A stretch of DNA of 64,000 nucleotides from Macrostomum lignano (lineage: Eukaryota), in contig NIVC01001003.1 in the NCBI GenBank assembly GCA_002269645.1, positions 275,863 to 339,862 on the forward strand, written 5' to 3'. Below are positions 4,401 to 40,832 of this stretch, in pieces. The notes beneath the pieces are model-generated. The model saw only the letters and a program-made list of their open reading frames with translations. It had not been told where the DNA came from and searched no databases. Positions within the stretch are counted from its first letter, which is position 1. Each line of letters opens with the position of its first letter. The position numbers and the translations under genes were made by a program.

Positions 4401-7400
4401 TGACTGCTGCCTCCAGTCCAGATGCTTTGCGCCAGGAGTCCATGCTTCCTTTCCCACCGGACCGGATCCGGATATGACACTAATACTGCAGCAAAGCACA
4501 CCCCATGTTAATATTTCATATATAGTAAGCGAAGCCCTCAAAGTCTGTCTGTAAGCAGATTTTGAGACTAGACTGAGAATTAATATTTAAAGAAGAATTA
4601 GTGCGACTATTACATTAGAAAGGGGCCGGTGTGTCTGAACCCCCCCATCTTGACAAGCATGACAAGACAAATTAACAACATGTAGTCATGCCAGTCCTAG
4701 AGCAGACAGGGTGGAAGCGAGAGCAGAATCTGAGAAATGCTTAATACTCGCACAGTTTATATGACGGTTGTTAAACAGTGAGGCCGTAAAATGAGTAATT
4801 TTGTAGCGTAAAATCAATATCAAAATTTCATAAACTATAAATTATCACAAACCTGAAATATCACAGACCCGAAATATCACAAACCCGAAATATCACAAAC
4901 CTGAAAAATCACGGACCTGAAATATCACAGACCTGAAATATCACAAACCTGAAATATCACAAACCCAAAATATCACAAACCTGAAATATCACAAACCTGA
5001 AATATCACAAACCCGAAATATCACAAACCCGAAATATCACAAACCTGAAATATCACGGACCTGAATATCACAGACCTGAAATATCACAGACCTGAAATAT
5101 CACAGACCTGAAATATCACAAACCCGAAATATCACAAACCCGAAATATCACGAACCCGAAATATCACAAACCCGAAATATCACAAACCCGAAATATCACA
5201 AACCCGAAATATCACAAACCTGAAACATCTCAAACCCGAAATATCACAAACCCGAAATATCACAAACCCGAAACATCTCAAACCCGAAACATCACAAACC
5301 TGAAATATCACAGACCTGAAATATCACAAACCTGAAATATCACAGACCTGAAATATCACAAACCCGAAATATCACAAACCCGAAACATCTCAAACCCGAA
5401 ATGCGAGCTATCATAACTCCGAAAAGCAAAATACCGTTGGGTGTTGCTGGAACTTTCGGAGTTATTTCAGCAAAAGACTGAAAAAAACAGAGCGAAAACA
5501 CTTATCAGCCACGTGTTGGTTGCATCGCAAGTTTTCTATTCTGAAGCAACTACAATCTCTTTCTTGCACCCACATGCCACTGTCCCGGAAAAGATCGACA
5601 GTTATGGCGTGTTCTGCGCGTTATTTTGCATCACGTGCTCTAACTTAAAAGAAAGGTAAAAGTAAATTATGCTGCAGATTTTATGCTGCTGTTTAAACAA
5701 CAGATCAAACTCCGGTGTAAACTACAGTTGACTCTTTAAGCACAGCACAGATTTCATCGATTAGATCTGCTCCTACACAAACCTCAGCAGCGAACGGAAA
5801 TGAATTCACGACACATGCCCTAACCCCCAACCTTGCTCTCCTTCAGACCCAGCACGGGCTTGGCACAGTGTCCAGGCACGCGGAAATGTGCAGCGAAATG
5901 CCTGGTAAGCCAGCGCGATTTCAATAACATGATTTTTTGTATTGAGGGTCAAATTTGTTGAAGGGAAAGTGGCTGGGGGTAGCCAGCAGCAGCACTTCAA
6001 TGCGTTAATCCAGGGTTTAAGCATCGGACTTTATCGATAAGCTCGATCTAAAAGTAATCTAGGCAAGGGTCAGCACTCTCCACAGCCTCCCTGTACAACT
6101 GCTTAGAGCCAGCTGCTCAAATGCACTCTCCCACAGCCTCACTGTACAACTGCTCAGAGCCAGCTGCTCAAATGCACTCTCCCACAGCCTCCCTGTACAA
6201 CTGCTCAGAGCCAGCTGCTCAAATGCACTCTCCCACAGCCTCCCTGTACAACTGCTCAGAGCCAGCTGCTCAAATGCACTCTCACACAGCCTCCCTGTAC
6301 AACTGCTCAGAGCCAGCTGCTCAAATGCACTCTCCCACAGCCTCCCTGTACAACTGCTCAGAGCCAGCTGCTCAAATGCACTCTCCCACAGCCTCCCTGT
6401 ACAACTGCTCAGAGCCAGCTGCTCAAATGCACTCTCCCACAGCCTCCCTGTACAACTGCTCAGAGCCAGCTGCTCAAATGCACTCTCCCACAGCCTCCCT
6501 GTACAACTGCTTAGAGCCAGCTGCTCAAATGCACTCTCCCACAGCCTCCCTGTACAACTGCTTAGAGCCAGCTGCTCAAATGCACTCTCCCACAGCCTCC
6601 CTGTACAACTGCTTAGAGCCAGCTGCTCAAATGCACTCTCCCACAGCCTCCCTGTACAACTGCTTAGAGCCAGCTGCTCAAATGCACTCTCCCACAGCCT
6701 CCCTGTACAACTGCTTAGAGCCAGCTGCTCAAATGCACTCTCCCACAGCCTCCCTGTACAACTGCTTAGAGCCAGCTGCTCAAATGCACTCTCCCACAGC
6801 CTCCCTGTACAACTACAGCGTGCAGACGGCTCAGTCAGCTGACAGCCTTCAGAGCACCGAGTTCTCAGACACTGCCAGCGGCCTCATTATCGGCTCCTTC
6901 GAGCTGGAGCACTGCCTGACTCCGTCAGACTCGCTGCTCATCGTTCTGGGCGAAGCCTCCGACTCGATGGGCGCCTCTGAGCACAGATGTCAGAGGCTGA
7001 CCGTCTGCAACCAGATGGCCGACGGGAAGCGGCGACGACTGCGGCTTCAACTGAGCCTCCGTCCGACCAGATCCTACACGATGAAGGTCTTCAAGCTGGC
7101 CAGCGGGTCCAGGCTGTGCGAGCAGCCCCGAGTTCGATTCTTCTTCACCAGGTCGGCGGGCGACGACCGGCCGCTGGTGCAGCTGGCGGCGCGACGCTGC
7201 GGCGCCTGTGGTGACGATGGCAGCGACTTCCGCTGCAACATGACGGCCTACCTGCGGAGCGGCTGGGTTGGTGGGCTGCTGCTAAAGCTGACCGGAGTTT
7301 TAGGCGATCAAAGTGACTGGATCAAATTTCCGGCCAATCAGAGTCAGCGGGTGTCGGTGAGCTCACGGAGACCGTTTTGGGCGAGCAAACGGCGGGAGTA

Positions 7401-9286
7401 ATGATTTAGTACGACTCACGTAGAATACTATAGCATTAAAATACTGTATTTTTTGCTTAAGGCAGCCTTCAAAGATTCTAAGAAACGAAATATTCTAGCC
7501 TTCTAAGATTTTCTAAGACACGTATGTTGCAGTCTTGAAAATTTTTATAAGAAAATAAATGTTGCAGTCTTGAAAGATTTTCTAAGAAACACAAATTCCA
7601 GTCTTGAAAGATTTTCTAAGAAACTAAATATTCCAGCTTTCAAATATTTTTTAAGAACGAAACGTTTTGACTCAAATGCAATTGTAAATTCAAACTAACT
7701 TTTTAAATTGCTGCAGAATTCAAACAGTTGGATTAAGGCAAACCTCTCCATGCAGATCCGAAGTTGGCAGCTCACCTATCATGTGAGTAATGTTTTTAAT
7801 AATTTGTAACACAGCTGAGCATATTTCGTAGAACTCAGAGCCTTCCAATTTAATTTCAATCCAGTTTCGCAAAACTGCCGGATCGAGACGGACGATTTCC
7901 AGTGCAAGGCGAAGCATCTTTTCATTAGGATTCAATGGTAATCCACTCTGTGATTGACCTCATTGACACTGTGATTGACCTCACCGACACTCTGATTGAC
8001 CTCACCGACACTCTGATTGACCTCACCGACACTCTGATTGACCTCACCGACACTCTGATTGACCTCACCGACACTGTGATTGACCTCACCGACACCCTGT
8101 GATTGACCTCACCGACACTTTGATTGGCCTCACCGACACCCTGTGATTGACCTCACCGACACTGTGATTGACCTCACCGACACCCTGTGATTGACCTCAC
8201 CGACACTTTGATTGGCCTCACCGACGCTCTGATTGACCTCACCGACACTCTGATTGACCTCACCGACACTCTGATTGACCTCACCGACACTCTGATTGAC
8301 CTCACCGACACTGTGATTGACCTCACCGACACTGTGATTGACCTCACCGACACTTTGATTGACCTCACCGACACTGTGATTGGCCTCACCGACACTCTGA
8401 TTGACCTCACCGACACTCTGATTGACCTCACCGACACTCTGATTGACCTCACCGACGCTCTGATTGGCCTCACCGACACTCTGTGATTGACCTCACCGAC
8501 ACTCTGATTGACCTCACCGACACTCTGATTGACCTCACCGACACTCTGATTGACCTTAACGGTGATTGACCTCACCAACACTCTGTGATTGATCTCAATG
8601 ACACTCCAAATTCCTCTGACTAATTATTTACAGACAAGTCGCTCCGCTCGCCGACCCTCTGTCAGCCCTCTGAGCCGCTGGCAGTCTGCCCGAGGCCGCT
8701 GTTGCCGCCGACAGTGGGCCAGTGGAGCGCGCCTTCGCCCTCCCAGTCGGCCAGAGGGTCTGTCAATCGATCAACAATCAGCGACACAGCGCCCGCAGTT
8801 TTAAGCTGGGCGCTTCCTCCGGCGCTAGTCCTGGCGCTCTTCCTGGCGCTCTACCGGGCGCTCTATGCTCAGCGCAATTGCGGCGATAGCAACACGAGAA
8901 AACTTGTCCTGCTAGTGCTTCCAGAAGCCGGAAATCCAACGACCCGTCAGCTTATTCGCCGGCTGCCAGCGGCCCCGGCCGGAGTCGAGATACGTCAGGT
9001 GGTCGGCCTGAGCAAGCTCAACCGACAGCTAATTGGCAGCTCGTGCCTCGTCATCTTCCTGAGCTGGGACTCAAAGTTCGACAGCTTCCAAGCTGGCAGC
9101 CTGTCGGATGCAGCCGGGAGGAGTCTGAGAACGGTGCTGCTGACTGAGAAGCACCGGATGCTGGGAGCCTTCATCAACTCGGGAGCTGGACCGCCTGCTG
9201 ACTCGATCTGGTCCGGCCTCGATGCCAGGATGCTGGGACTGGACGATGGAGCGGCTTGGAAAGATCTGCTGCTCCAGGCTGCTTGA
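1455..9286 (+). CDS. Receptor paralogue A: type I single-pass membrane protein with Cys-containing ectodomain and TIR/SEFIR-like cytoplasmic domain
   Basis: Hand model with compatible phases: 1455-1574 (signal peptide MPLVLRVVMPLLLCALCSDC; donor gtgaga), 5751-5904 (donor gtaagc), 6800 to about 7356 (donor position uncertain), 7717-7782, 7832-7937, 8634-9286. TM helix VLSWALPPALVLALFLALY is followed by RKLVLLVLPE..GVEIRQVVGL..LVIFLS..LLTEKHR. Exons 3-6 align with paralogue B. The TIR/SEFIR assignment comes from the alternating beta/alpha pattern only. Confidence 0.7.
2005..2740. repeat. 16-bp minisatellite (CTCCGTCACTGCCTCA)n, intronic
   Basis: Direct tandem repeat. It explains ORF 1985-2827. 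Confidence 0.95.
3596..4190. repeat. 35-bp minisatellite (TAGATTGTGTCTATGGTTTTGGAGACAGACAATGG)n
   Basis: About 17 tandem copies with a 35-bp period. Confidence 0.95.
4841..5400. repeat. 17-bp minisatellite (AAACCCGAAATATCACA)n
   Basis: Tandem copies. A few related monomers also occur at about 19270-19335. Confidence 0.95.
6073..6812 (+). repeat. 51-bp tandem array at the intron/exon boundary of receptor A
   Basis: Unit ATGCACTCTCCCACAG|CCTCCCTGTACAACTGCTCAGAGCCAGCTGCTCAA. There are 15 CACAG acceptor-like sites (6085, then 6136 to 6799 every 51 bp). Confidence 0.95.
7950..8600. repeat. 21-bp minisatellite (GATTGACCTCACCGACACTCT)n filling an intron of receptor A
   Basis: Starts about 12 bp after the donor at 7938 and ends about 30 bp before the acceptor at 8633. 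Confidence 0.95.
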
Positions 9287-9489
9287 GAACGGATGGTAGC
9301 TTTTGGTGGGTCTCAGGTTATTAGACGAGCGGGAATCGTTTTTAGAAATCATGGACCCGTGGGTTACGTTGCTCCCTAGCGTGTTTTAGCAACTTTAGAT
9401 TTTTTTTATGGACTAAAAGTAAAATATTAAATATCTTCATTTGGAAAATTCACGAGGTCCGACAAGCCAAATACGTCATGCCATGTACA

Positions 9490-9855
9490 CTGGGAATCGC
9501 CCATGTACACTAAGAATCGCCCATGTACATTGGGAATCGCCCATGTACATTGGGAATCGCCCATGTACATTGGGAATCGCCCCCCCACCGAATGACACTG
9601 TGGGAATCGCCTCCCCCCGATACACATTGGGAATCGCTCCAACCGATATACATTGAGAATCGCCCCCCCCTGCCCCGATATACATTGGGAATCGCCCCCC
9701 CCCGGCCCCCACCGATGTACATTGGGAATCGCCCCCCCCACCGATGTACATTGGGAATCGCCCCCCCACCGATGTACATTGGGAATCGCCCCCCCACCGA
9801 TGTACATTGGGAATCGCCCCCCCCCACCGATGTACATTGGGAATCGCCCCCCCCC
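9490..9855. repeat. 20-30-bp minisatellite (GGGAATCGCCC(n)ACCGATGTACATT)n
   Basis: Tandem copies with a variable C-run. Confidence 0.9.
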
Positions 9856-10389
9856 CATTTACGCCTCTGCCTCCTTGTCCAAACGGTGGCCTCAATTCGC
9901 CATTGATGTCAACCCCTCCAATTAAATTTCAGATCAAGCTTGAAAAGTTTGGCAAACTTTTGTGCGGTCAACTGATCCCGCGATCACTCACTGATGTACA
10001 AAGTTGACACCTGCAGCTATCATTATAAAAGTTCATACGCATCGAGTTAAGATTTAGGTCAGGAGGCAAAGAACATTCATTAGTCAATTTCTGTGTTCAA
10101 TTCCTATTTTGAAAAGCCATTATTATTTCATAGTTTATTAGTCTGTCATTTTACGCGTATTTTCGAATTGATTTCGCCAAATACTCTACTAGTAGTCACT
10201 GTACGTTCAGTGCCAAAATGTTATTGAGAAGAAATTTGTAAATAAATTGAAATAAATTTTTTAATGCTTGATTTTTGTCCCTTGTTGAAGTTTGGGCAAT
10301 GCAATAATAAAATACAATGATTATTTATTTAAATTATACGCTTGTAAATACTTGCTGTAAATCTGCAATAATGACCTCTAGGTACTTAC

Positions 10390-10640
10390 AGTTTGACACC
10401 CAGTTACTTTATGGCTCACTCTGACACCCGGTTAGTGTACTTTTATAGTTTACTCTGACACCCGGTTAGTGTACTTTTATAGTTCACTCGGACACCCGGT
10501 TAGTGTACTTTTATAGTTCACTCGGACACCCGGTTAGTGTACTTTTATAGTTCACTCGGACACCCGGTTAGTGTACTTTTATAGTTCACTCTGACATCCG
10601 GTTAGTGTACTTTTATAGTTCACTCCGGACACCGGTTAAT
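10390..10640. repeat. 34-bp minisatellite
   Basis: (GACACCCGGTTAGTGTACTTTTATAGTTCACTCG)n, about 6-7 copies. Confidence 0.9.
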
Positions 10641-11802
10641 GCAGTATTATTGTGTGTCTCACTCCAAAACCAGTTATTATAACAATAATTATAACATATG
10701 AGGCTATACTTCAAGTCATGGTAGTATTGACCTAATCAGCGAAGGTGCAAATTAGGACCCAAAATAGTTCTTTTTAATTGTTCTGCACTTTAATCAGGGA
10801 CAACTGATGCAGGACGCTTCCGTACATGTATTTCTTCAGAGCATATAGTATAGCCCATGTACGTGCATACTCGTACATGTATAGACAAACCTAAGGTCAG
10901 TGTTTTAGAGTCGCAAAAATTGAGTTATTTCGCTGCTATGCTTCTGCTTTTCATACATGTGGATCTAATTTGTTTCAGATCTTTAGCGGAAATCGCACCC
11001 CAACACGTGTATTCTGTTGTGTATTAAAAGGATTGACTGGAAAGTAAAACGGCCCTTTTCAGGGCCACCTTAAGCCACAGATACTAGAGTACACTAAGTA
11101 GATGAGCCACTCAGGCAAAAAATAAGCCTTCTGTTTAATAAAGGCAGCTGAAATGACTTTGAGTTCAGAAGCCCAAGCTTGCAGGCGTAAACAGCTTGCT
11201 AATTGGTTCAGCCATGATCTACATTAGCCAGTCCAACTGAAATGTACATGGCAGCTTTAGGCTGGAATTCCGAGAAAGGCAATAAAAATTGGGACGGGCA
11301 GGGGTTAGTGAGGAAAGGCGCGGTTGGAGGGTTTAAGCTACGCTGCTACGGGTAAGAGTCAATTAATGAGCTTTTGGTGTTAAAAATACATTAAAATCCT
11401 TCTGTTTAACGTACTACTGAACTGAAAGTAGCTTGCACGCAAATGTGCTGAGTGGCCCTAATCTATTTTATTCTAGTACATTATCTGTGCCCTAAACGAA
11501 CATAGCGGTTGAGGCTAAAAAGAGTGGGGGCACAAAATATGCGAAATATGGAGAACACGATGATGCGGTTCTGAATGCTACACTCGTAAAAAAACCGCGC
11601 GGAGTAAGAATATCAATCTCTCTGTTCCTACAGTGCCCGTCTGGCACCAACCAGCGTAAACAGCCCTAGGCTTGCTCTTTCTTTTGAGTCGTTTCCTTCG
11701 TGCAACAGATCATACTCTTCCAGTTTAACCAGAAGTATAAAGCCGCAGACCAATAAGTATAACAATGAGTAAGCACATTCAACAACTTTCAATCAAGGAC
11801 GA

Positions 11803-12302
11803 CTTAAGTAGGACAGGAAACCTCGTTTCTTAGAAAATTTTAGAAGGCAGGTTTTTCCGAAAAAATACACTACGGAGATAGGAAGTTTTCATTTTTTTCA
11901 GCACAAAAAAATTGCTATTGCTTTTGATATGAGGCAGATCCAGTGTTCATCTTTGTTTGTTTGTTACAGAGTCAGCTAAGAATGACAAAATAACATCATA
12001 AAGTTAAAGAGCAGACCTGTGCCATCTCAATAGTTTTCAGGCACAAGACACGCGCAAATGTATGTAGAATAAAAAATTCACATAGCATCCTAATTTTCTG
12101 AACGAGAAGCTTATTGAATATCGATAGAGCAATAAGAAAGACACAACATAGCAAAAGATGAACACTGGATCTGCTTCCTATCAAAAGCAAAAGCAATTTT
12201 TGTGCTGAAAGAATGAAAACTTCCTATCTCCGTAGTGTATTTTTTCGGGAAAGCCGGCCTTCTAAATTTTTCTAAGAAATGAGGTTTTTTTGTCCTCCTA
12301 AG
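11803..12302. mobile_element. MITE-like foldback with inverted arms of about 150 bp
   Basis: 11803-11955 is the diverged reverse complement of 12152-12302 (e.g. aatacactacggagataggaagttttcatt versus aatgaaaacttcctatctccgtagtgtatt). The spacer is about 200 bp. No clear TSD. Confidence 0.65.
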
Positions 12303-12379
12303 ACTGGCAAATCTCTCAATTAGATGCATTTTTACAGTGCCGGATGATTTTAAGACTGGTCCAGTTCCATTTAATTCTA

Positions 12380-12903
12380 AACTGTCAGCTTCCACTGCTT
12401 CTGTGCTGAGTCAGCTGATGATGGTAGGCATGACAAGGACAGTTGAATGGTGGCATCCTGCTGCTTCAGATTCGGATTGACAGACTGGAGAATCCCTCCT
12501 CCGGCATGCACCAGCAGCTGCCTAAATGCTGAGCGAAACTTACGAGTATTGCCCAGTCTGAGTCCGTGGCTTTCCTGTACTTGCTGCAACATACACACAT
12601 ATTTACATTCTTCTGTTCGGCCACACAAATGTTCCCAGGGACTGCCACTGCATGGTTTCGAATCAGCTTCAACATGTGCGACACATCCAAGAAGGCTGAA
12701 ACCTGAATGCCAGGATCTCAGCGCTATCAGTCACTTTTTTCTCATTACTTTAATTGTCCGTTGGAAAAGTCTGGAAGGACTCCGGGATTCCGGATACAGC
12801 GGGAGGCGTCGCGTCGCCGCTAAGTAAGGAGGGACACTCCCGCCACCACCAGCGGCATCGCTGCATTGTTTGAACAGCCAAACAGCACAGCAAAAGCTGT
12901 CAT
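12380..12903 (-). pseudogene. Internally deleted THAP/P-element (THAP9-like) transposase remnant
   Basis: Minus strand reads MTAFAVLFGCSN (THAP-like start), SFQTFP (THAP FxxFP-like) and VSAFLDVSHMLKLIRNH, matching the P-element transposase D-x-x-H-x-x-K motif. Stops and frameshifts are present and no TIR pair was found. Confidence 0.45.
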
Positions 12904-13626
12904 GACTTCCTCTTCTTTTCCCGGCAATTTAGAAGATTCAGATTGTTATTTCATTTCATTTAAGTAATTATATTTCCAATAACTTTGCTTGTCACTTAAA
13001 AACTAGTATAGCATTGCTATTTTGGTCTCTAGTGCCACTTTAATGTAGATGTTAATTTAAATAAGGGCAGACAGCTAAAGAAGGGCCAGGGCCAGTCTTC
13101 CCCAGGCCACTGATATCGATCGTTTTGGGATGGAGTAGAGGGGACCATTTTTTGCTTGGTCATTTTTTACAAAAAAAACAGCCCCAGGCAAAGCAATGCT
13201 GGATGCGCAGTTTAGTTATACTTATTGTTCTGAGGCTGGCGCTGCCCTGCAACATCATTTCGAGAAGAACATTTCTTGGAAATAAACCCAACTACACTAA
13301 AAAAATTATTCACTGCGCCATAGCAGCGTACACTGAACCACGGCCGGAGACAGTAAATGATTGTACATTTGCATGTACACACCGGACAGAAATGTATACG
13401 TACATCGAACCATTCATTTCTATAGTTTACTAGTTTACTGGCCAATTAGAGTTAATAATTAATTATAGCCGACAATTGGTTGAGGTCAGCATAAAATAAC
13501 ATACATATATTAGAAACCAAAACTTAATTATTACAAGCCTCTCGATAATTATCTCTTGATAAGCAATCCTCGTTTCTCAGTAAGTTCCAGTTAACAAATT
13601 AAAACGAAAAGATTTTGCTCTTCGAA

Positions 13627-19622
<5,996 letters not shown>

Positions 19623-19779
19623 ATGCCCTTAATGATGAGAGCGGAACAGAAAATACTGATCAAGGAGGCGAACGGAGTTGAAAAGTAAATTACAAAGAAT
19701 AAAAATATCTGAGGAGACACGGACTTGAGACTGAGAGAGGAAAGACGACAGCGACAGAAGACGCGTATGCAGACAAGGA

Positions 19780-22830: not shown

Positions 22831-23274
22831 ACAACACATCGAAATTTTCAAAGAAATCGACACTCAAATCGGCAAAAATTCCGCCACGGAGCAGCGGAGC
22901 ATGGCAAAAAAATAACAAAGAACACTTGCTCTCCTACCGAAAATATTTTAATTGTATTGTTTTATATCAAACCAAATATATATTATACACTTAACGAATG
23001 CTGTGATGTAAAAAAACAAAATACTTTTATATTTTTTATTTAAAGTTAAAAAGAACGTTACGGCGACAGTTCTCTATTTATGACAGTATAAATGAGTCAA
23101 ATGACAGCTAGTGTGAGTGACAGCTATAATGTCCGTGTATTGATAGCATCGCTAAAATAACGTGCAAGCCCATAAAGGTGTAAGACGTAATCATCATTCA
23201 TACGTTAGCTTTTAGTTATGTTTAATAGCTGTCTACGACAGGCGATTGAATAAGGAGAAAAGACTGAGAAACAT

Positions 23275-28000: not shown

Positions 28001-28765
28001 GATGTGATCAGCTGGGTGCCAGTCGAGGGAATAGATGACTGTCTTGAAGGCGGCAGAGTGCTTGGCTATGACGTCATTGATAACGGGTACAACGTTGGCA
28101 CCATCCTCTTTGGCTGGATAGACTTTCAAAGCGAGGCTACCCGTGATGAAGTCGTTCTGCACGTCAACAATCACCATGGCAACTGGGCCGGAGAAAATCA
28201 CGCTCAGCCAGGGCAGAGCGCGAGCCGCCATGTCCGAGGGCGACACGAGGCCGTCCTGGAGAAGAGGAGCACTTTACTGCAGTCACCTGACCCCACCAAT
28301 GGAATCAAAGGGTGTCACCTGACCCCACCAATGGAATCCCAGGGTGTCACCTGACCCCACCAATGGAATCCCAGGGTGTTACCTGACCCCACCAATGAAA
28401 TCCCAAAGTGTATCATATGCTAAAAAAATTCTTAGCATTTCAAGACCATACCAACCTTGTCCTTGTCCAAGAAGGCATAGATTTTATCCAGCTCAGCTGC
28501 ACTCAGTGAACCACTGGTTGCAATGGACTCAACCAAATTTTTTACCTCTGCTTTGTCTAATGCATTATCTCTAAAATAGATAAATTTTTTGAGACAATCA
28601 GAATAATTTATTTAAAACTGAAGTGCAAATTAAACATATATGTTAAACAAAAATCATAACTTACTTGTTTGCATCAAATGTCTGAAAGATCCTTTTTATA
28701 TCAGCTTCTGTGATATCCTTGCCAGGATATTGGTTAAAAAACTTGCTATTGCCAAACATTTTGTG
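25060..28765 (-). CDS. Naam: Nicotinamidase with N-terminal EF-hand (isochorismatase family); 5' exon not located
   Basis: Exons on the minus strand: 28765-28665, 28255-27953, 27507-27370, 25830-25519, 25152-25060 (TGA). Motifs IVDVQNDF, LDWHPADH, WPRHCVQ, VYKGTDPDIDSYSAFWDN, GLATDVCV, C-terminal KRDRP and EF-hand IFQTFDANKDGLVSPSD match the Drosophila Naam architecture. One base is missing at the 28665/28255 junction. Confidence 0.93.
25240..25510. repeat. 21-bp minisatellite (AGCATGAGCAATGACTAGATC)n in a Naam intron
   Basis: Tandem copies abutting the donor at 25518. Confidence 0.9.
25860..27350. repeat. 20-bp minisatellite (TTCCAAACAGACACAGTCAG)n filling a Naam intron
   Basis: About 1.5 kb array between exons ending 27370 and starting 25830. 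Confidence 0.97.
27570..27905. repeat. 22-24-bp minisatellite (GACACTGAGACAAGATAGAGGG)n in a Naam intron
   Basis: Tandem copies between exons 27953 and 27507. Confidence 0.9.
28282..28410. repeat. 32-bp tandem repeat, about 4 copies, next to a Naam acceptor
   Basis: GTCACCTGACCCCACCAATGGAATCCCAGGGT repeated. Confidence 0.85.
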
Positions 28766-29081
28766 CTGTAAGTAGTTGTAAGATTATACAACATAAGAAG
28801 TTAAATCTATAAAAATAAATAGAAAGTCATGGTAATAGTTACTAAGGCTAATTTCAAATGTCAAATGTTTAATATTTAATAAAATTGTAATAGTTGGCTT
28901 TATTATAATATATATTGCTTGTCATTAAATATGAATAAAGGTAAAACCTTATATCCTTGAATTGTCTTTTTGAAAAGCAACTATTTCAATTTTTTATAAA
29001 GACTAGCTATAAGTATAAAGGCTAATAAATACATAATACTATCAATACTGATATTCATAAACTAGAATACTAATAAAAATT

Positions 29082-29248
29082 CAGTGGCATATATAGGATT
29101 TTCTATTGGTGGTGGGGGTTGCTGACAAACCAGGGCCACAGGGAGTATCGTCTATCTGCACCAACAAGTTTGGACAATAAAGGACCTTTTTGGGGTTCTC
29201 TCTGGCTAGTCACCTCTGGCAAGCCCCTCGCCCCCTGCATATGCCACT
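29082..29248. mobile_element. Small MITE with short TIRs
   Basis: AGTGGCATAT...ATATGCCACT 10-bp inverted ends enclose a GC-richer insert of about 165 bp within AT-rich intron DNA. Confidence 0.45.
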
Positions 29249-32200
29249 ATAAACATTAGAAGTAAACATAGTTGTGACATTGTCACTGGTAAATAGATAA
29301 AAATTAGTTTTAATTTTCCAAATCAATGACAATAACTAGTAAACTAAGGGCCTAAATATAGCTGATTTTCTTTAGCTATAGATTAAATTTTATTTCAATA
29401 GCATACTTAAGCTTAGTGCTAAATGACTACCTATTAATATTACTAAAGTTTAAAATAAAAAATGAAATGATTAATTTAAATTCATGTAGGGGCCTATATT
29501 ACTGTGATCTCAGCAGACAGAAGTTAAAAAGTTAAAAGCACATGTACTAATGTATTTTTGTCTATGGCTGAAATCAGTGAAATGCTTGTTCGGTCAGGGA
29601 GGTTACTACACTTAAGTGAGCACAGCGAGCCAAAGAGCTTTGGAGTACAAGTGCCCATGTGATATCCGCACACCCGTCAAGTTTAAGACCTTTGAACCCA
29701 ACTCATTAGTCAACAAAATTACAGAAATTGATTGCGGTTGGTTTGGTATCTAACTTGTCGAGTGATAAAAACAGTACACTTACAGCAGTTAAAATTTGCC
29801 AAACTACAGAGACACATGGGTAAGAAACGCAATCGTTTCTGTCACATGACAAGCTTTTAAAAGATAAATAAAGTAAGTACAAAAAACTAAAATAAGGTCA
29901 GTATTCTGCAAACCTACATAAAAATCGTTTGTTTTTAGTTAAAATGCAAAGCTTACTAAAAATAGTTTTCGCCTTTGAACACGACAATTGTTTCAGAACC
30001 AGAATATATATTTCCGATTCTTGAACCAGTATTGGTAGGAAAATCAAAATCATAATCATTCAAATTGTTTCAAGTGTTTCATTAGCTTTTACAAGCAATG
30101 GATTTCTCGATCAAAATTTTTGAACCTGCAGCTGACAACGGTTCTGGAACTGATTCTTGAATACGGAACATTGAAGATGAAGCACAAGTGCTGTTTTCGG
30201 AAGCAGTAATATGAAAACGCTGTATTAAGTGATTCTGCGTACGCGGACACAAAATGATAGCAGTGCAGTTTCTGGACGCAGGACAATACAATTACATGCT
30301 AGAAAAAATCGGCGAATTTCTATCTTTTTTAATTGATTCAATGCGCTGTAGCTGATCCCGTTGGCCTTTTTCTTACATGTATAGATTTTGTTGAGTTTAT
30401 GGCGAAATTGTTTAGCGAAAACGGACCTCTTATGTTGTAAGTTTTCTTTTAGGCCTTGCTGACTTTTACCCAAGTATATAATTATTTTACCTATTATAAT
30501 TATTTATATACCTATAAGCTATATTTGTCTTATTTTACATAATTCTTCTTGCTCTTTTCGGACTCGGCTTACTTTGCTGTCTTATATCGGGCCTTTCCGC
30601 TAGGCCGCTAGGCCTCTTCGGGTTAATTTATTTACTCGCATTTTTGTGTCAATTGGACTGATGACTGACTTCTCGGCCGATCTTCTGCTGGACCTCTAAG
30701 GGCCTCCTTTTTTAATAACTAATTTCTGACGGGGCAGATGCTAAGTACCCGAGGGTGCTGCGTCAGCAGGCCGCAGTGCCTCGAGCGGGCGTCGGTGTAG
30801 ATTGGGTGAGAGAGACCAGAGAGATAAAAGAACTATTTTACCGCAGTGCGCCCTCATCCCGCTCGCTACGTGGGCCCTCTACCCCTAATGGTGTTCACCA
30901 GCTTGGACCTGCCATCCTGCTGGTCCTTGTGAGCGCTCTTTCTTGGTTCGGCCGTCGCTTCTTGGTGTCTCCGGTGCTCGAAGTTGCTGTCGCGCGCTCT
31001 GTTGAATTTCCTTGCTGATACTTGCTCTGGGGTACCCCTATGTAAATGTTCATTCCCAGAGCTTTACGCTAATTCCTGGCGAATTTGCTGAATTGGAATC
31101 TTCTGTTGATAGCCCTGCCGGTCCTGAATTCCTATACTAGTTTTCGTGCCTATCTGGCACTGCATTAAATAGTTACGGTAAGCATGCATTTTTTGTCCTT
31201 TTAAAAAGATTTTTCTCTGTTTTTGTTTGTTTTCTATAATTTCTTTGGTGCTCTTTTACAGCAGCTTGTAAATGAGCAAATCAGGGAATTAAGCTGCACT
31301 CATCCTGTCCTTCCGCGCTCCTGCCTCCGCCGATGAAGTTACTCAGCCATACCGTGCGATCTCGTCAGGTTGAAATTTGTAGATGACTCTGAGGTCAGAG
31401 GGAACCACTTGTAAGTCTTCTTTTAGGCCTTGCTGACTTTTACCTAAGTCGGTCTCTCATGCACTTCCGTTCTAAATAATTCTTAAGCCTAAAAGATCTT
31501 ACAACCGAGATCGTCAGCCGGTTGGCTACAAATTGAGCCTTTAGCACAAAGGAAAAATATAAGTCGCTTGGATTTAAATGAACTGCACAGGAGTTCTAGC
31601 TACCACTTAAGGTTCTTTTAAGGCTCATTTCGGGGCCGAGGCCGTGTCTATTTTATAGATTTTACACGTCATCCCCCGCCGCTGATTAGCAACGGCGGGG
31701 TGCCAAAACAGACGCAGCAACATTAGATTAGCGCGTTGCTACGGGGCAACAGAGATAATTTAATATCTGTTAGTTGGTCGCCTCAGGCGATGGTTAAAGG
31801 TCAGTTCAGGGTTCATTATTCGAGTCGATTCGCACGTCAGACCACCCGTGCGTCCCTCGGTGAGTCGTGCTTTCGCTCCCTGGGCCGATCCACGTACGTC
31901 ACCGCTGACCTTGGCCTGTTGACCATCGCTCTATCTCGCCCGCCAGTCGGGGTATCTTGCCGTATCGATTCTCCTGGCACCGCGCCGACTGACTCTGTCT
32001 GATGGCACCTCGACCAACTTTGAAGTCATCTCGTTTGGTCTGAAATCTTGGGGGACAGCGACAGTTAAGTTCTTATCATATGTATGATTTATTTCGCTTT
32101 CTTGTCGTTCTTTTAATTTCTTTTACTTAAGTGTCAGGGACAACTTAAACTACCGGGACGCGAAACCAGCCAAATCATGGCGAAAAACGTTGGGGGCTCG

Positions 32201-32414
32201 TTCATTCTATGGTCCTATAGCTGAGACACTTTAATTAGATTGGAAAATGAAATTAGAATTGGTGCAGAAATGTCGTAAAAATTTTTCTTATAAAACCAAC
32301 AAGTCGTAGTTTAACCCCTGTACAGAGCCCGAAATGTGTTTTATTAAAATCCTGAATAATACGCACAAAATGGCGTACAATACTCGCGACAAGCAGTCAT
32401 AACAAAGTATAAGG

Positions 32415-33048
32415 TGTAGTGAGCCGCTAGTTTATTGTTTGGCGTCGCCCTTTGTCAGCAGTCGCCCTTGCTCTCGCCCCCTCTTTGGGTTGCTGTCTGC
32501 CGCTGGTCAGCTTCCCGCTCCCTTGTCTGTCTGCTCCTGTCCCTTTTGCGCTCCCTTTGCGTCTCTGTTCTCAGCCTTCAGCTTCTCTGCTGTTGGCTGT
32601 CTCTGTTTCGCTTCCGTCCCGTTTTCCTTGTCTTGTGAGCTAGTCACATGACAGTTTTTGAGTTCTTCGAGTCTTAAAGTGCAGTAAACATGTTTACTGC
32701 ACTCGCTGGCCCTGTTTACCGGGTGAGTCACATGCTTTTGGTCCCCTCCCTTCTCTAAGGAGAGGAGTGACTCGTGTTGCTAAAAATAGCAACTGAGTCA
32801 CAGCCATGTGCACTCTGCCGGGACCCTCAAGTGACGTCAGTTCTAAAAATAGAACGAGTCACGAGGTCTTCCGCACGCTTGTACCCTGCCCAAGACTCTT
32901 AAGTGACGTCAGTTCTAAAAATAGAACGAGTCACGAGGTCTTGTGCGTGGTAGTTTCCCGGCTATAAATAGGACCCCTCTCCCCCTTGTTTCCGTCAAGG
33001 AGCTTCCAGTTTTCTTAAGTGCCTAACCGGGAAGCAAACCGCGTTCTA
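32415..33048 (-). mobile_element. Probable solitary LTR inside the DNA transposon
   Basis: TGTAG...CTACA inverted termini, AATAAA about 17 bp from the minus-strand 3' end, and an internal 42-bp enhancer-like direct repeat containing TGACGTCA (about 32829 and 32901). No TSD seen. Confidence 0.55.
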
Positions 33049-33310
33049 CAACAAAGGGAAGGCATAACAAAAAAGTAAAAACTTGTAAGAAAAAGTGGTG
33101 TGTGCGAAAACGTGCATCGGGCCCGGTTGGAAAAGAAAATATTCTTGTTCGTTTAGTTTCAGAGTTGTAGTTTGATCTGCACGTTCGTGGCATGGCTTTC
33201 TCTCAACTACAGGCGCATGATTCTTAGAGCTCATTGAAAATTATAGAAGCCCCTCAGCAGTCGACTTACTTTAGTATAGGATTTTTATTTTTTTTTTACT
33301 TTATTATAGA

Positions 33311-33958
33311 ATTCATAACTTTGCCACTTCATTTCGACATACCCAGTAGAAAGGCAACAGAAAAGTCGATGCGCTTGTCCAGTACAGAAAGAACTGTTAA
33401 AAACAGAAAGCTGTGTATTTAAGTCACATGAGGAAGTAGACAGTTGCAACAGTGAAATCAGTTATGTCCGCCAAAGTTAATGCTCGTTCGCTGCAACAAG
33501 CTACAAATTTCACATTATCTGCTGCTCATTGATGCACAGGGGCAGAAACCGCATCACATGTCGTTCCCAGGCAAGGCACTTCGCGGCGGAAATTTCCTCT
33601 AGTGCAACGTAGCCGCAGCGGAAAAGCACCATGAGTCTCCACTGCGTTGGGTTGATGCCATCAGGCGGATAGCTAAGTCACTTTCTAAGTCACTTTTAAG
33701 TCCGTCACTTTCTCACCCCTGTTCATTGCTTCAATGACAAGATGCCTTCTGTCGTTTCCAATGGACGCGTATGCAGCCATTTTTAGGCACACAAGGAAAG
33801 TGACTGTTGCCCAAGAAGAGGACACGTTCATATAGGCTTTTCATTTCTATGAGAGGTTTGGCCATAGATATTCACCCACTGATATCCCAGCCCCCTCTGG
33901 CAGTGTTTGAGTCACTCCGCGCGTCAAGTCGAAATGATGTGGCAAAGTTATGAATTCA
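33311..33958. mobile_element. Nested MITE with 30-bp TIRs
   Basis: GAATTCATAACTTTGCCACTTCATTTCGAC ... GTCGAAATGATGTGGCAAAGTTATGAATTC, with one mismatch. Confidence 0.6.
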
Positions 33959-35629
33959 ATTGGAAAACAGCGCACTTTATTGCCATAGACTCTATGGCCA
34001 CTCTGCCAACTTCTATGGACGAAATCAAATGACAATTTTATGAAATCAAACGAAAAAACCTATACTATATAGAACGAAGAAGGCGCGTATCACAAAGCAA
34101 AACACATTAAATTGTCCACAGCCATAGACAAACAAACGAGCCCCCAACTTTTTTCGCCATGATTTGGCTTGTTTCGCGTCCCGGTAGTTTAAGTTGTCCC
34201 TGTTAAGTGTCTTATCTCTAAATTGAACTTTCGCCCCCTGATTTTTGCTTCTTACTTTGCCCTTTAGAGAACCTTTTTTATTTGCTCAGACTTTTCCTAA
34301 TTTCTAATCCCTATATAAACTTTTTAAAAATATTCGTAACTTTATTAGACTACTGCATCGATCTTTTTTGCATTTGCAAAAAGAAAAATTTGCTGAAAAG
34401 GCAATGCTGAGATCGATTCATTCATGCATCGAAACATTTAGCAAAGTGAGATGTTATTCTGCTATTAGCTATACTACTGCTAGCATGTTATTCACTAGTA
34501 GCGTCCTGACGTGTTAAGTCGTCCAATACAAACTTACAAAGAATAATAATATTTAATTACATTTATATGATGGTCCAATATTGTTTTAAACTCATTTTTG
34601 CACGTGTGATGGCGTGTCAAAGGCAAAAATCCCAAAATTTGTCTACATGTAGCTCAGTTGACATGCAATGATCGAGGAACCAAAAGCACGACTATACATG
34701 TATATTGAGTATATCTACTGTATGTACCATCTACTGTACATGTACGGGCGTGGTTGCATAAATGAACCAGAAGTGCTCTGTTTGTCTGTCCGTGCATCTC
34801 AAGGCCCGTGCAACATTACCATCGATAATTGTATATATTAATACACGGAAACATATGTAGAGAAACGTTGTGATACAATGTACGTGTACATGCAAGATGC
34901 ACGGCTCCTCTTGAAGAGATCTCCAAGCTTAGCAGAGTACTATAAAAGTAGTAAGATAAAAACATGAATAAGCTTTCATGAACATGCCTGCAATATCACG
35001 TAAACAGCGAGTGATCATTACATAGTCCGAAAAACCGGCCGGTTTTCAACCGATATTTCCAAATATGGTAAATGTCAATTTAAATGCGACCTAAGCTTCA
35101 CCCCTTTTCTATGTAAAACCCCACCGGTCAATGGACAAAGTACATTTCTTGATTCTTATCAATAAAACCGGTTTGGGGCTCAAGGTCAATTATAAGTGTG
35201 TATAAATACAAGCGAGAAATCCGAGCTGAAACCTCAGACTCAGAGCAGCCTTAAGAAATCTTGGGCTTAGCCAGAGCTACTAAGCAAGGCTATATCTCTG
35301 AGAGAGACAAACACAAATTGGTAAGCCTTTGTTTGAGTCTTTGTTACTTGAGTCTTTGTTATTCGATTATTAAGAGCTGTCATTGCCGGCCGTTACTGAT
35401 CAGTCGATTTATTAAGTTATTGAATTTGAGGCCTCCCTATTTCTAAGGGATTGGATAGGATCTGCGGACCGATTCCAATACTCTTAGTCGATTATTGATT
35501 GATTAATTTTGGTACCCTAGAGTAACCGATAGGAGCACACGACTCCGATTCCGTTATTTCTAGAAGAAGACGCCCTTTCGGAGGACTTTGTCATTGTTAT
35601 AGAGTTGACTTTGTTATTAGGGCGCATCT

Positions 35630-36175
35630 CTGATCTCAGCACTCGAGGAATATGATGGTTTCTGCAATCGAGGAATATAATGGTTTCTGCAATCGAGGAA
35701 TATATCGATTTCTGCACTCGAGGAATATAATGGTTTCTGCAATCGAGGAATATATCGATTTCTGCACTCGAGGAATATAATGGTTTCTGCAATCGAGGAA
35801 TATATCGATTTCTGCACTCGAGGAATATAATGGTTTCTGCACTCGAGGAATATATCGATTTCTGCACTCGAGGAATATAATGGTTTCTGCAATCGAGGAA
35901 TATATCGATTTCTGCACTCGAGGAATATATCGATTTCTGCACTCGAGGAATATAATGGTTTCTGCAATCGAGGAATATATCGATTTCTGCACTCGAGGAA
36001 TATAATGGTTTCTGCAATCGAGGAATATATCGATTTCTGCACTCGAGGAATATATCGATTTCTGCACTCGAGGAATATATTGATTTCTTCACTCGAGGAA
36101 TATATCGATTTCTTCACTCGAGGAAAATAATGGTTTCTGCACTCGAGGAATATAATGGTTTCTGCACTCGAGAAA
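35630..36175. repeat. 25-bp minisatellite with two interspersed monomer types
   Basis: TCGAGGAATATATCGATTTCTGCAC and TCGAGGAATATAATGGTTTCTGCAA. Confidence 0.93.
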
Positions 36176-37370
36176 CATATTGTCGTCGACGGACTATGTT
36201 ACTAAGCTCTCTTATTCGGCCGATTTAGAATTCAAGAAGACTACTCCGGAGGAAGAAGATTCGAAGAGACGAGTTCGGAGAACCTGCCCGACAAAGAAGA
36301 GGAGCCCGCATCAGTAAGTGATTACTGAATTCTGTTACCAGGCTTAAGGTCTGGAAGTGGGAGTTTTCGAGTGACTGAATACAACTCTTAAACTCTTCAC
36401 TCTTATCGTAGCAATGTCATACATGTAGCTCGTATATAGACATTCGCGGTGTGCCACACTATGCGCACTCTCATCGTACGTGGTCATATAATTTTAGGCG
36501 GTGCAGCACTCGCAAGAGCGTCGAGCCAAGCAGTACATCCCCATTTGATTTTGATATACCTTTTACTATAGAGTGGCTAGCGTACATGTGTAGCTAGGCT
36601 ACCTAAAATATGCACTAGGCTATACTATCACATGTCATGGACAACTAGTTGTCCATGTCACATGTACTTTGTGTACTTTTTGCCATAAAATTCAACTATT
36701 GTGATCGTCCTGTACGAATAAATACTTGTACATGAATGTAAATCAATGTAAGAAATAAGAGTATATGTATACGAAATTAGCAATTGCAGTATATTTGCTT
36801 TAAAATAAAAGAACATGAAGCACATGTACATTGAGTAAAGTATAAAATGTCACAGCGCTTAGTATAATGTTACAAGGACCACTAGCTACCCGTAAAACAC
36901 TACGACGACGATGGACATATCGCTTTCAAACTTTTTTCATGCATGTACATATAGTGTGAAAGTACATGCACGGAAAGTGTACATAAGGCTTGATGAATAA
37001 GGAAAAATGTATTACATGTACATTGATGCAGATTAGTTTGTATATTGTAGCGCATAAGTATATTTTGCATTGTTTTAATTATCACAATAAATGTTTTACG
37101 TACTGAAATAAAAATTTCAAATAATACCTGTCATCGCAGACAACGAGGATAAATTTAATATATGTAAAAATTATCGTTTAAAGTCTGCCAGTCATAGATA
37201 AACCACATTAGCCAACAAAGGCATTTACACGTAGTCGTTGCTCGTTGAATATGTCATCGCTGTTGTTTTACTGCGAGCACGGAAGTTAAGAGTTTTTTAC
37301 CATAAATTAATAGTTAAGTCTCATTTCCAACGAATTTAAACGTATAGTAACTCTTATAGCATAAAGGCTC

Positions 37371-40300
37371 TCACCGTGAAACATCCTCATTGAAAATCAT
37401 ATTAGCCAAATCGCTAGACAATATCTTTAGCGCTGCCTCGTCATCATCCAGCTTCTTGGCCTCGAAACCCGACCAGGCCAAGTTCGCTGGCAGATCGTCA
37501 GTCTTCTCGTTGACGAAGATTCCTTGAAATCGATGCTTCTCAGTTAGCAAGAGGGTTGTCAAGCTGTGTCTGGATCCATCTGAGAGGGTGTCGATCTGCA
37601 ATAAGGGAAATAAAAACGATTACAGGTCTTTTTCGTTGTCCTTGTCTGTCATTTGTTATTGAAGTTTTCCATCCGACAGTACAAGTACCACTAGGAACAC
37701 TTCGTTATATAAGGACGTTACACTCTCGATTCGTGTAAAAATAGTTGAAGGCCGATTTTCGTTCTCGTATACATTATTATAATATTAGAGGAGAAAGACT
37801 TTAAAGCATAAAGACCAAATTATGCGGGTTCTGTATATGATCTCCAGACTCTGGTATATTTTCAGAAACGTCACAAAATTTTGCATTCACATAAATGTGC
37901 GTAAGATTTTCAGCTACTTATTAATTTTACTTTCTAAACTTGAAGATTTGGATAGCTACCAGACGCCCAAAAATAGGGTGTCTCCATTGTACAGGATTTT
38001 CTTGCATCTATACATCTAGTGGGAAACTAAACTAACTGGTTTGCTTGGTAGTAGGGGACAAAAATCTGAACAATTTGGCGAAAAAATCAACATTCTACAT
38101 GCAATCGATTCGGAGATACAGGCATTTAAACAATCGGCCTTCAACTGTTTTTGCACGATTTGCAAGTGTTGCGTCCTTCAAGTCTAGTAGTCCTTGCGAC
38201 GGTAACCATGAAGTACATGTAAGTTCCCTTTGAATTTGTTCTGAATCAGTTTCCCTGCTAGATAATTTGACATTATTTGAGTCTCCATGCCCGTACATGT
38301 ACATCTGGGAAGAATCGATGCGAGAGAAAATTATAACACCCATGTACTTGCCCGAAAGCTATCAAAAGCCGAATCGGCGCTCATAAACACGACAAGATTC
38401 GAACTTCCGACCAATTGTCGCGTCAGACTTTGCAGACCAACAACCTTTACCACCTCGACGCCAGCGGCAGCCGCTGTCAGCGCGTGCTGGAACCGCCGCA
38501 CAGTTTTCCGGCTAATGGCGTTGACATTTTCCAGTTCGGGCAGCACTAGGAGAATGAGCTTCCGTGCATTTCTCAGCCGACGATGACAGTACACGATCAG
38601 CATCAATACTGACACTGGCACTAGCAATACTACGACAAACGCCAGCAAAATTACGGTTGTAGCAAATGTTTCAACTCTGTCAGCATAACCAGTTTGGTCC
38701 AGGGACATCAGCTTAGCCGGACAAAGTTTGCAGCTATCGAATAGAGCCTCATCAAGATGGCAAAGCTGCGGATGAAGCAGCTTCTCTGCCGAGCCGTCTG
38801 CGTTACGTTTGCAGGGGATTAGCGTTAATCCATTAGGTTGTATGAGTTGAAATATTGAATTCCTCCCACTAAAAGACTCACCTGACCCGCGGATTGCGAA
38901 AAACATTCGCCTACTCGTACAGCATTTTCGACTGCTATTTGCAAACCTTGGACGGAACTGAAAATCAAAATTGGCAATGATTGGCATTCGAAAACCTACT
39001 CTAAAAGAACCATTTTTACGTGAAAGAAACGTGAGACAGGTACACACATCAATCCGAATGAGAAGGCCAGCGGCAGGTGATATTCGAACTACGACCGACT
39101 GTTTGACCCACAGATTGCGTCTCTGAAGCCAACATGAGTGCGATTGGATGTACAATCGGTTGGGTGGAATTGAAAAGCTTTTTTGAGCGAGATAATTTCC
39201 GAGTTAATACGCTCGTGCGAGCACTTACATAAAAAATATCTGAGACATTCTGGAGATACTGCACCAAATCAACGGTGCTACTATAAAAAGCTACCCGCAC
39301 CAGGAGCCTTGATGGACTCACCATTTTGTCGCTGAACTCGTAGCTGTCAGCGCTCCAAACAGACGGTTCATTCAGAGTCAGGCGCAGCCCGCCAACCCAG
39401 CCGCTCCGCAGGTAGGCCGTCATGTTGCAGCGGAAGTCGCTGCCATCGTCACCGCAGGCGCCGCAGCGTCGCGCCGCCAGCTGCACCAGCGGCCGGTCGT
39501 CGCCCGCCGACCTGGTGAAGAAGAATCGAACTCGGGGCTGCTCGCACAGCCTGGACCCGCTGGCCAGCTTGAAGACCTTCATCGTGTAGGATCTGGTCGG
39601 ACGGAGGCTCAGTTGAAGCCGCAGTCGTCGCCGCTTCCCGTCGGCCATCTGGTTGCAGACGGTCAGCCTCCGACATCTGTGCTCAGAGGCGCCCATCGAG
39701 TCGGAGGCTTCGCCCAGAACGATGAGCAGCGAGTCTGACGGAGTCAGGCAGTGCTCCAGCTCGAAGGAGCCGATAATGAGGCCGCTGGCAGTGTCTGAGA
39801 ACTCGGTGCTCTGAAGGCTGTCAGCTGACTGAGCCGTCTGTACGCTGTAGTTGTACAGGGAGGCTGTGGGAGAGTGCATTTGAGCAGCTGGCTCTAAGCG
39901 GTTGTACAGGGAGGCTGTGGGAGAGTGCATTTGAGCAGCTGGCTCTGAGCGGTTGTACAGGGAGGCTGTGGGAGAGTGCATTTGAGCTGTGCATTTGAGC
40001 AGCTGGCTCTGAGCAGTTGTACAGGGAGGCTGTGGGAGAGTGCATTTGAGCAGCTGGCTCTGAGCGGTTGTACAGGGAGGCTGTGGGAGAGTGCATTTGA
40101 GCAGCTGGCTCTGAGCGGTTGTACAGGGAGGCTGTGGGAGAGTGCATTTGAGCAGCTGGCTCTGAGCGGTTGTACAGGGAGGCTGTGGGAGAGTGCATTT
40201 GAGCAGCTGGCTCTGAGCAGTTGTACAGGGAGGCTGTGGGAGAGTGCATTTGAGCAGCTGGCTCTGAGCAGTTGTACAGAGAGGCCGTGGGAGAGTGCAT

Positions 40301-40832
40301 TTGAGCAGCTGGCTCTGAGCGGTTGTACAGAGAGGCTGTGGGAGAGTGCATTTGAGCAGCTGGCTCTGAGCGGTTGTACAGGGAGGCTGTGGGAGAGTGC
40401 ATTTGAGCAGCTGGCTCTGAGCAGTTGTACAGGGAGGCTGTGGGAGAGTGCGTTTGAGCAGCTGGCTCTGAGCGGTTGTATAGTGAGGTTGTGGGAGAGC
40501 AAGATAGAACATGAAAACCATATAAAAATCGGTGGCTCCAATCGGCAAAAACCGATGTCCATGCTAAAATATAAAATTGTTACCGTCCATTTTTGGGCAG
40601 TTAGTCTCGTGCAGTGAGTCAATTGGACCAAATTGTATTTTTTTAGGAATCTGAAATTCATTACGGTGCACTTTCAGTTCAAAAGTAAATGGATGCGTTG
40701 AGGTTTTTATACCAGTGTTTGCATTGGACCTACCTCCAGGTTGCAGTCTGCAGTTGAAACTTCAGTGCTAGAGACACCAACTATCATGATGAAGGCGGTA
40801 CAGCAAGCAGACAGTATATTGGCATTCGACAT
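37371..40832 (-). CDS. Receptor paralogue B: type I single-pass membrane protein with TIR/SEFIR-like cytoplasmic domain
   Basis: Model: 40832-40734 (signal peptide MSNANILSACCTAFIMIVGVSS; donor gtaggt), repeat-containing exon ending 39229 (gtaagt), 39122 to about 39046, 39000-38882, 38797-38352, GC-AG intron, 37595-37371. TM VILLAFVVVLLVPVSVLMLIVYC is followed by RKLILLVLPE..GVEVVKVVGL..LVVFMS..LLTEKHR, homologous to paralogue A. Confidence 0.7.
39850..40500 (-). repeat. 51-bp tandem array, inverted homologue of 6073-6812
   Basis: Same unit with CGC/TGC variants and a 13-nt insertion at 39988-40000. Confidence 0.95.

Follow-up and report, generated by a model that had tools for sequence, protein, structure and literature searches.

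A near-identical inverted patch in two divergent receptor-like genes of Macrostomum lignano, a probable footprint of conversion-like copying

In a stretch of 64,000 nucleotides of the Macrostomum lignano genome (assembly GCA_002269645.1, contig NIVC01001003.1, positions 275,863 to 339,862 of the forward strand; hereafter the window, numbered 1-64000), two convergently oriented genes, here called gene A and gene B, share a block of nearly identical DNA in inverted orientation, although they are otherwise very divergent. This leads to the question whether the block is a device, namely an invertible switch, or the trace of copying from one gene into the other; a preliminary description of the window had proposed both, with copying as the minimum. 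The analysis presented here suggests that the inverted repeat is most probably the evolutionary footprint of a non-reciprocal, conversion-like copying between ancient paralogs, and not a device.

The repeat pairs positions 6073-7279 on the plus strand with 40499-39384 on the minus strand, over 1.1-1.2 kb. A repeat scan placed the arms at 6676-7291 and 39372-39987 (616 nt, 98%), and blastn paired 6177-7279 with 40499-39384 over 1116 columns at 96.6%. The shared block, or patch, contains an intronic minisatellite with a 51-bp unit, the 3' end of the intron, and the first 454 coding bases of the main ectodomain exon. The arms are composed as follows.

6073..6814, plus strand: arm A array, 51-bp unit, 14.6 units according to Tandem Repeats Finder (TRF), in the intron upstream of the gene A ectodomain exon
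6800..7279, plus strand: unique part of arm A, starting at the gene A acceptor; 6826-7279 is coding in both genes
39850..40499, minus strand: arm B array, 12.7 units plus a 13-bp insert at 39989-39977 (TRF and unit map), wholly within gene B intron 1
39384..39863, minus strand: unique part of arm B; 39837-39384 is coding

That the same 51-bp array precedes both copies, as first described, is borne out by TRF and by the unit map, and a search of the window with the 51-bp unit returned 24 matches, every one of them within the two arrays, while 0 would be expected by chance. The unique parts of 480 bp (6800-7279 versus 39863-39384) align without gaps and with 4 mismatches, corresponding to 99.2% identity. 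The mismatches are found at 6822 (G in gene A, A in gene B), 6992 (A and G, Gln and Arg), 7209 (T and C, synonymous), and 7272 (T and C, synonymous). The near identity seen at the outset thus holds, but the number of differences is four and not three, position 7209 having been overlooked. At the 3' edge, identity drops just past the residues GWVGGL, in the middle of the exon as had been reported, with the reading frame kept; mismatches begin at 7280/39383, and 162 of the 256 aligned columns beyond the edge differ. On the 5' side, the shared block begins where the array begins. No other DNA similarity between the 10-kb gene regions was detected by blastn with a word size of 7, either past the GWVGGL edge or upstream of the arrays.

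The gene A model was derived by tblastn of two M. lignano proteins, A0A1I8H6B0 (714 aa, an ML2-based model) and PAA52225.1 (BOX15_Mlig029866g3, 458 aa), with splice sites and frame checked. The gene B model is based on the ML2-based M. lignano protein A0A1I8HTN6 (UniRef, 'Secreted protein', 110 aa) for exons 1-2 and on homology to gene A for exons 3-5, with splice sites inferred from the sequence.

1455..9286, plus strand: gene A, 6 coding exons, 508 aa
1455-1574, plus strand: gene A exon with signal peptide, used by A0A1I8H6B0 and also found independently by a signal-peptide exon scan
5847-5904, plus strand: gene A exon with a phase-1 donor at 5904
6800-7356, plus strand: gene A main ectodomain exon
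7280..7356, plus strand: gene A-specific tail of this exon, LLKLTGVLGDQSDWIKFPANQSQRVS, ending at the donor TCG/GTGAGC and without DNA similarity to gene B
7717-7782, plus strand: gene A small exon
7865-7937, plus strand: gene A small exon, exon 5
8634-9286, plus strand: gene A last exon, with stalk, transmembrane (TM) segment, cytoplasmic domain and stop
37371..40832, minus strand: gene B, 5 coding exons, 457 aa
40832-40734, minus strand: gene B exon 1, signal peptide, MSNANIL...CNLE followed by gtaggt
39837-39322, minus strand: gene B exon 2
39322..39383, minus strand: gene B-specific tail of exon 2, RLTLNEPSVWSADSYEFSDKM, ending at the donor ATG/GTGAGT and in frame with the patch
38957-38882, minus strand: gene B exon 3
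38797-38340, minus strand: gene B exon 4, with stalk, TM segment and the N-terminal part of the cytoplasmic domain; its donor TGG/GTGTTA is weak
37595-37371, minus strand: gene B exon 5

A gene A model joining 7356 to 8666 was dropped; PAA52225.1 and A0A1I8H6B0 show the exons 7717-7782 and 7865-7937 and two upstream exons. The segment 5669-5716 was weaker as a candidate for exon 1 than 1455-1574. The two genes enter the patch at the acceptors cacag/CC (6799/6800) in gene A and gtacag/ACG (39838/39837) in gene B, which are 26 nt apart and both located within the patch. Because the phases of the upstream donors differ, genes A and B must use different acceptors. A0A1I8HTN6 splices the private exon 1 of gene B straight to ACGGCT at 39837, and the array is therefore a part of gene B intron 1.

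The age of the patch was compared with that of the paralogs by Nei-Gojobori counts. In 453 coding bases of the patch, A and B differ by 2 synonymous and 1 non-synonymous changes, giving 0.017 synonymous (dS) and 0.003 non-synonymous (dN) substitutions per site. In the cytoplasmic domain, the proportion of synonymous differences (pS) is 0.75 and thus saturated, with a dN of 0.37. A divergence so far below that of the rest of the pair is the mark of a conversion tract, and it fits the minimal claim of the preliminary description, a recent ectopic conversion or exon transfer. The remaining exons, which had been called distantly alike, are true homologs downstream of the patch, with 53% amino acid identity over the TM and cytoplasmic part, and B exon 3 (FRPRFANSSRK..) is homologous to A exon 5 (FRKTAGSRRT..), both being phase 1. 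Since homologous gene structure flanks the patch on each side, a replacement at a homologous position is indicated rather than a random insertion. The GGL junction, the phases, and the downstream homology likewise place the patch at the same exon position in both genes, with the frame kept and no net gene rearrangement.

Both gene products exhibit the pattern of type I membrane proteins. Each starts with a signal peptide, the N-terminal exons being hydrophobic in A and B alike; an ectodomain predicted to be all-beta, a single TM helix, and about 150 aa of cytoplasmic domain follow. The TM stretches, VLSWALPPALVLALFLALY and TVILLAFVVVLLVPVSVLMLIVY, were judged by eye and from the AlphaFold2 helix 301-319. 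A and B thus look like receptor-like type I membrane proteins, the furthest label that the data allow. The designation of their C-terminal halves as TIR-like was not supported. Pfam searches at E<=10 with the patch, the cytoplasmic domains, and full-length B gave no domain match, TIR and SEFIR included, a sub-threshold DUF7767 hit excepted; the PDB, searched by profile and by sequence, gave nothing at E<=10; and an AlphaFold2 model of PAA52225.1 made without an alignment was unusable (predicted local distance difference test score, pLDDT, 37), with an alternating beta/alpha pattern only. Homologs were sought in a word-indexed collection of 5.8 billion proteins and, with HMMER, among 1.84 billion representatives. 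For the patch, the cytoplasmic domain, and full-length B, only the three M. lignano proteins A0A1I8HTN6, PAA52225.1, and A0A1I8H6B0 were found in the two collections, and HMMER gave no match beyond M. lignano among the representatives. The word-indexed search found no B-type homologs, a weak negative for this family because the index is incomplete and the search missed PAA52225.1 twice, a protein about 98% identical to the patch query and matched by HMMER with an E of 2e-81 against the C-terminal profile. As far as the sequences tell, A and B appear to be ancient paralogs of an orphan, Macrostomum-specific family.

A second locus of the same assembly (Mlig_3_7), NIVC01003280.1:21191-44359, was reached via PAA52225.1 and allowed the transfer to be placed in time. 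It is collinear with window 1-18557, at a substitution divergence of about 1.1-1.6% in the two cleanest stretches and of at least 3% elsewhere, a figure inflated by arrays and indels. Gene A is tandemly duplicated there (positions 5686-13741 of the second locus), with a junction at 9576/9577 that joins window position 9273 to 5458. Over the patch the two copies do not differ, and the first lacks about 390 bp (window 7470-7860) including exon 7717-7782. The gene A-specific tail 7280..7356 is identical in copy A2. A four-way alignment of the patch, comprising the window copies in gene A and gene B (A_win and B_win) and the two A-type copies of the second locus (A1' and A2'), contains 7 variable sites; the bases are given for A_win, B_win, A1', and A2', in this order.

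Site 6822: G A G G
Site 6885: C C T T
Site 6992: A G G G
Site 7003: G G A A
Site 7061: G G A A
Site 7209: T C C C
Site 7272: T C C C

The patch tree is accordingly a star, in which A_win carries 3 private changes, B_win 1, and the second locus, represented by its A-type copies, 3. The distance of B_win to A_win is the same as to the A copies of the second locus (4 differences each), and A_win and those copies differ at 6 sites. Taken together with a background divergence of about 1%, the star suggests that the transfer is about as old as the split between the window and the second locus, and the arms appear to have undergone no exchange since about that time.

The arrays carry a record of their own. 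Each 51-bp unit contains CTCTCCCACAG, a motif resembling a 3' splice site, and comprises 17 codons without a stop. The unit is a duplication of the gene A acceptor and the first 14 nt of the gene A exon, and it is in frame for A; in the gene A array, joining the phase-1 donor at 5904 to any of the 15 CACAG acceptors (15/15) keeps the frame and leaves it open. The sequence of the array suggests an origin at the A locus. In gene B, the 9 upstream acceptors come into frame with the phase-0 donor of exon 1 through the 13-bp insert (39989-39977). Alternative acceptor choice could, judging from these reading frames, add 17-aa repeats to the N-terminus of the A and B products. The B array and the A-type arrays of the second locus have the unit variants CCTCTCTG and AACCGCT in common, as well as the 13-bp insert CAGCTCAAATGCA and a degenerate first unit (TCACT.TA.AAC). 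Both variants and the insert have been lost from the A_win array, in which a CTTAGAG variant has expanded. The shared degenerate first unit and variants indicate that the A and B arrays are homologous from the first unit on.

Based on these observations, a course of events can be proposed. A segment of 1.1-1.2 kb, from the first unit of the intron minisatellite through codon GGL of the ectodomain exon, would have been copied one way between A and B, near the time at which the window and the second locus separated, at roughly 1% divergence. An A-type gene would have been the donor, and gene B's own version would have been replaced with its reading frame kept. We infer this direction from base composition and from the logic of the arrays. 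The GC content at third codon positions (GC3) is 0.81 in the patch, 0.69 in the last exon of gene A, and 0.44-0.60 in the other exons of gene B, so that the patch is nearer to the last exon of A than to the exons of B; a unit built from the acceptor and exon start of A, and in frame for A, likewise points to an A-type donor. Mechanistically, the copying may have been a single illegitimate or one-sided event that made use of one-sided homology or of microhomology, in which a break in or near one array would have been followed by invasion of the other array, synthesis into the exon, and resolution by in-frame end-joining or a template switch. Alternatively, it may have been the most recent round of conversion in an island of long standing, with the minisatellite as its anchor. 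The inverted arms that resulted could in principle allow an inversion through non-allelic homologous recombination (NAHR), as a by-product.

Several points weigh against this reconstruction. In the blastn comparison with a word size of 7, the flanks offer no homology for canonical double-strand-break repair at either end of the tract, and only the arrays are homologous, which makes a purely homologous conversion hard to picture as the founding event. GC-biased conversion in a long-lived island would raise GC3 above that of both genes too, and the GC3 of gene A's own exon tail is only 0.56. The phylogenetic comparison with the second locus covers only its A-type copies, and a third paralog outside the sequences compared may have been the donor.

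A literature search on gene conversion in Macrostomum found nothing relevant. The closest likeness is to interlocus gene conversion between the human fetal globin genes HBG1 and HBG2, in which an intronic simple repeat marks the end of the converted tract. Both cases combine a near-identical short tract in divergent paralogs with abrupt edges, one end at a tandem repeat, a kept frame, and a non-reciprocal course. The M. lignano case differs in that no DNA homology is detectable in the flanks (pS 0.75), that the paralogs lie 32 kb from each other in inverted orientation, and that the tract holds a whole minisatellite of 0.65-0.74 kb.

The alternative that survives best, although it is unlikely as the full account, makes the island the whole history: repeated conversion since the ancient duplication, with the minisatellite as initiation site or anchor and with edges where the divergence of the flanks escaped. 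This would account for flanks without homology without invoking an illegitimate event, and a patch GC3 above that of the other exons of both genes is what GC-biased conversion predicts. One tract end lies at a tandem repeat, as in the fetal globin genes, and A_win and B_win share C, G, and G at 6885, 7003, and 7061 as opposed to the second locus. However, B_win differs from A_win as much as it does from the A copies of the second locus, the three changes of A_win and the one of B_win have remained unexchanged, and the arrays have drifted apart. To keep an intronic minisatellite homogenised over a time that saturates dS would also be demanding.

An improbable alternative is reciprocal recombination of the arms by NAHR, recurrent in the germline or somatic, so that both orientations of the 32-kb segment exist and promoters and signal-peptide exons are swapped. 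The geometry envisaged in the preliminary description is right: high-identity inverted repeats (1.1-1.2 kb, 96.6% overall and 99.2% in the unique part) bracket a spacer of 32,104 bp (7280-39383) between convergent genes, and a crossover in them would flip it. Both frame-compatible acceptors lie within both arms, so chimeric transcripts would be translatable. Of the chimeric receptors that were expected from a flip, the exchange of promoter and signal peptide stands, but most of the protein would be nearly unchanged, only B exon 1 and A exons 1-2 being different upstream.

Inversions over similar spacers have precedents. In yeast, a 24-kb flip/flop region of chromosome XIV lies between the arms of a 4-kb inverted repeat, which consists of paralogous sporulation genes and is continually homogenised (PMC9731477). 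As in that system, inverted paralogs flank a spacer of a few tens of kb, the identity of the arms stems from homogenisation, and inversion is possible. In yeast, however, both orientations are documented and the arms are near identical within strains, whereas in M. lignano one orientation was seen, and arms of 1.1-1.2 kb cover parts of genes and have diverged since the last exchange. Human inversions mediated by inverted repeats span 5.1-226 kb with repeats of 1.6-24 kb (PMC3961182); the NAHR geometry and the breakpoints inside genes are alike, but the M. lignano repeat falls short of the sizes covered by that study. Its arms are shorter than the repeats of both precedents, and minisatellite makes up more than half of either one.

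The sequences at hand argue against such flips. Three independent A-side junctions (two at the second locus and one in the ML2-based A0A1I8H6B0) are all parental, and PAA52225.1 also joins the 5' part of A, the patch, and the 3' part of A; this sample is very small and restricted to the A side. No chimeric protein model was present in the collections searched, the index being incomplete, and exact look-ups of 6 spliced A and B isoforms gave no match. The private substitutions of the arms, their differing array maps, and the equal distance of B_win to A_win and the second-locus A copies indicate that exchange is rare on the scale of about 1% divergence, which argues against frequent exchange.

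Far less likely than such an inversion polymorphism is a programmed switch. In bacterial invertons and shufflons, programmed inversion is carried out by site-specific recombinases, and inverted repeats bracket a segment whose flip re-pairs 5' and 3' gene parts, a layout that the M. lignano locus resembles. In contrast to these systems, it belongs to a metazoan nuclear genome and has ordinary diverging homologous arms, with neither a recombinase gene nor short recombination sites. Pfam searches with the neighbouring open reading frames (ORFs) showed no recombinase system, but only decayed Tc1/mariner HTH and DDE_3 domains and an RNase H of a long terminal repeat (LTR) retroelement. The invertible switch put forward in the preliminary description finds no backing here. 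More doubtful than an inversion polymorphism as such is the stronger proposal that the arms are a live NAHR substrate, with recurrent 32-kb flips in populations or in somatic or neoblast lineages and with acceptor choice in the arrays varying the N-terminal repeats. If this were true, two promoters and signal-peptide exons would be re-paired with two sets of ectodomain-stalk, TM, and cytoplasmic modules.

An assembly artefact, in which one arm is a mis-join or a collapsed duplicate, is very unlikely. In its favour, M. lignano assemblies are redundant and repeat-rich (more than half of Mlig_3_7 is reported to be repetitive, with simple or tandem repeats making up 15% and duplicated non-repetitive blocks of >=95% identity amounting to 180 Mb; PMC5730564) and the window is full of minisatellites. 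Against it, the arms differ by 4 substitutions and in array structure, and both continue in frame into their respective flanks, through proper splice sites and on to downstream exons that are homologous. The A junctions are seen two further times, in an independent Mlig_3_7 contig, and the ML2-based A0A1I8HTN6 links the private exon 1 of B to the exact variants of B, Arg plus Val. Equally hard to credit is a mobile cassette, in which the array and exon fragment would belong to a multi-copy element, transposable or captured, that inserted into both genes. Transposable elements abound in the region, and the array edge is also the 5' limit of the block, but no terminal repeats, target-site duplication, or transposable-element protein was found at the block edges, the block lies in frame at a homologous exon position of two paralogs, and it occurs only in A-type genes and B within the 87 kb examined (window and second locus) and only in A-type and B models in the protein collections, the index being incomplete.

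The surroundings of the two genes were annotated as well.

7280..39383, no strand: spacer, with the 3' parts of genes A and B, a zf-CCCH gene, Tc1/mariner remnants, an isochorismatase-domain gene and many minisatellites
14887-19600, plus strand: proline-rich CCCH zinc-finger gene, zf-CCCH at 17673-17975, equivalent to the 610-aa zf-CCCH gene at 17015-23169 of the second locus
15787-16759, plus strand: decayed Tc1/mariner-type transposase, HTH_23/PAX-like and DDE_3, over several frames
25504-28273, minus strand: isochorismatase-domain gene (Pfam PF00857, E 7.6e-17 for exon 25504-25875), its exons split by long minisatellite arrays
41713-45100, plus strand: LTR-retrotransposon fragment, gag-like ORF 41713-42102 and RT_RNaseH 44101-44827, about 0.9 kb upstream of gene B exon 1

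The Tc1/mariner relic is also present at 19771-21324 of the second locus and is thus older than the split of the loci. Minisatellite density is extreme over the whole window (1-64000), with 45 TRF rows of a score >=200 and arrays in the introns of several genes; large arrays are 3 kb of 32-bp units at 19811-22834 and 1.5 kb of 20-bp units at 25869-27350.

The locus thus offers a clean, small case in which a short tract anchored on an intronic minisatellite was probably copied between paralogs that have no other nucleotide homology. Such copying turns a gene into a mosaic and incidentally leaves an inverted repeat that could mediate a later inversion. Gene-conversion mosaics are already known, and no new mechanism is revealed. 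In practice, caution is required because reads and transcripts of genes A and B are indistinguishable over about 450 coding bases. For Macrostomum genomics, the finding brings to attention an orphan receptor-like family at a structurally unstable locus, with a second haplotype or homeolog that carries a tandem gene A.

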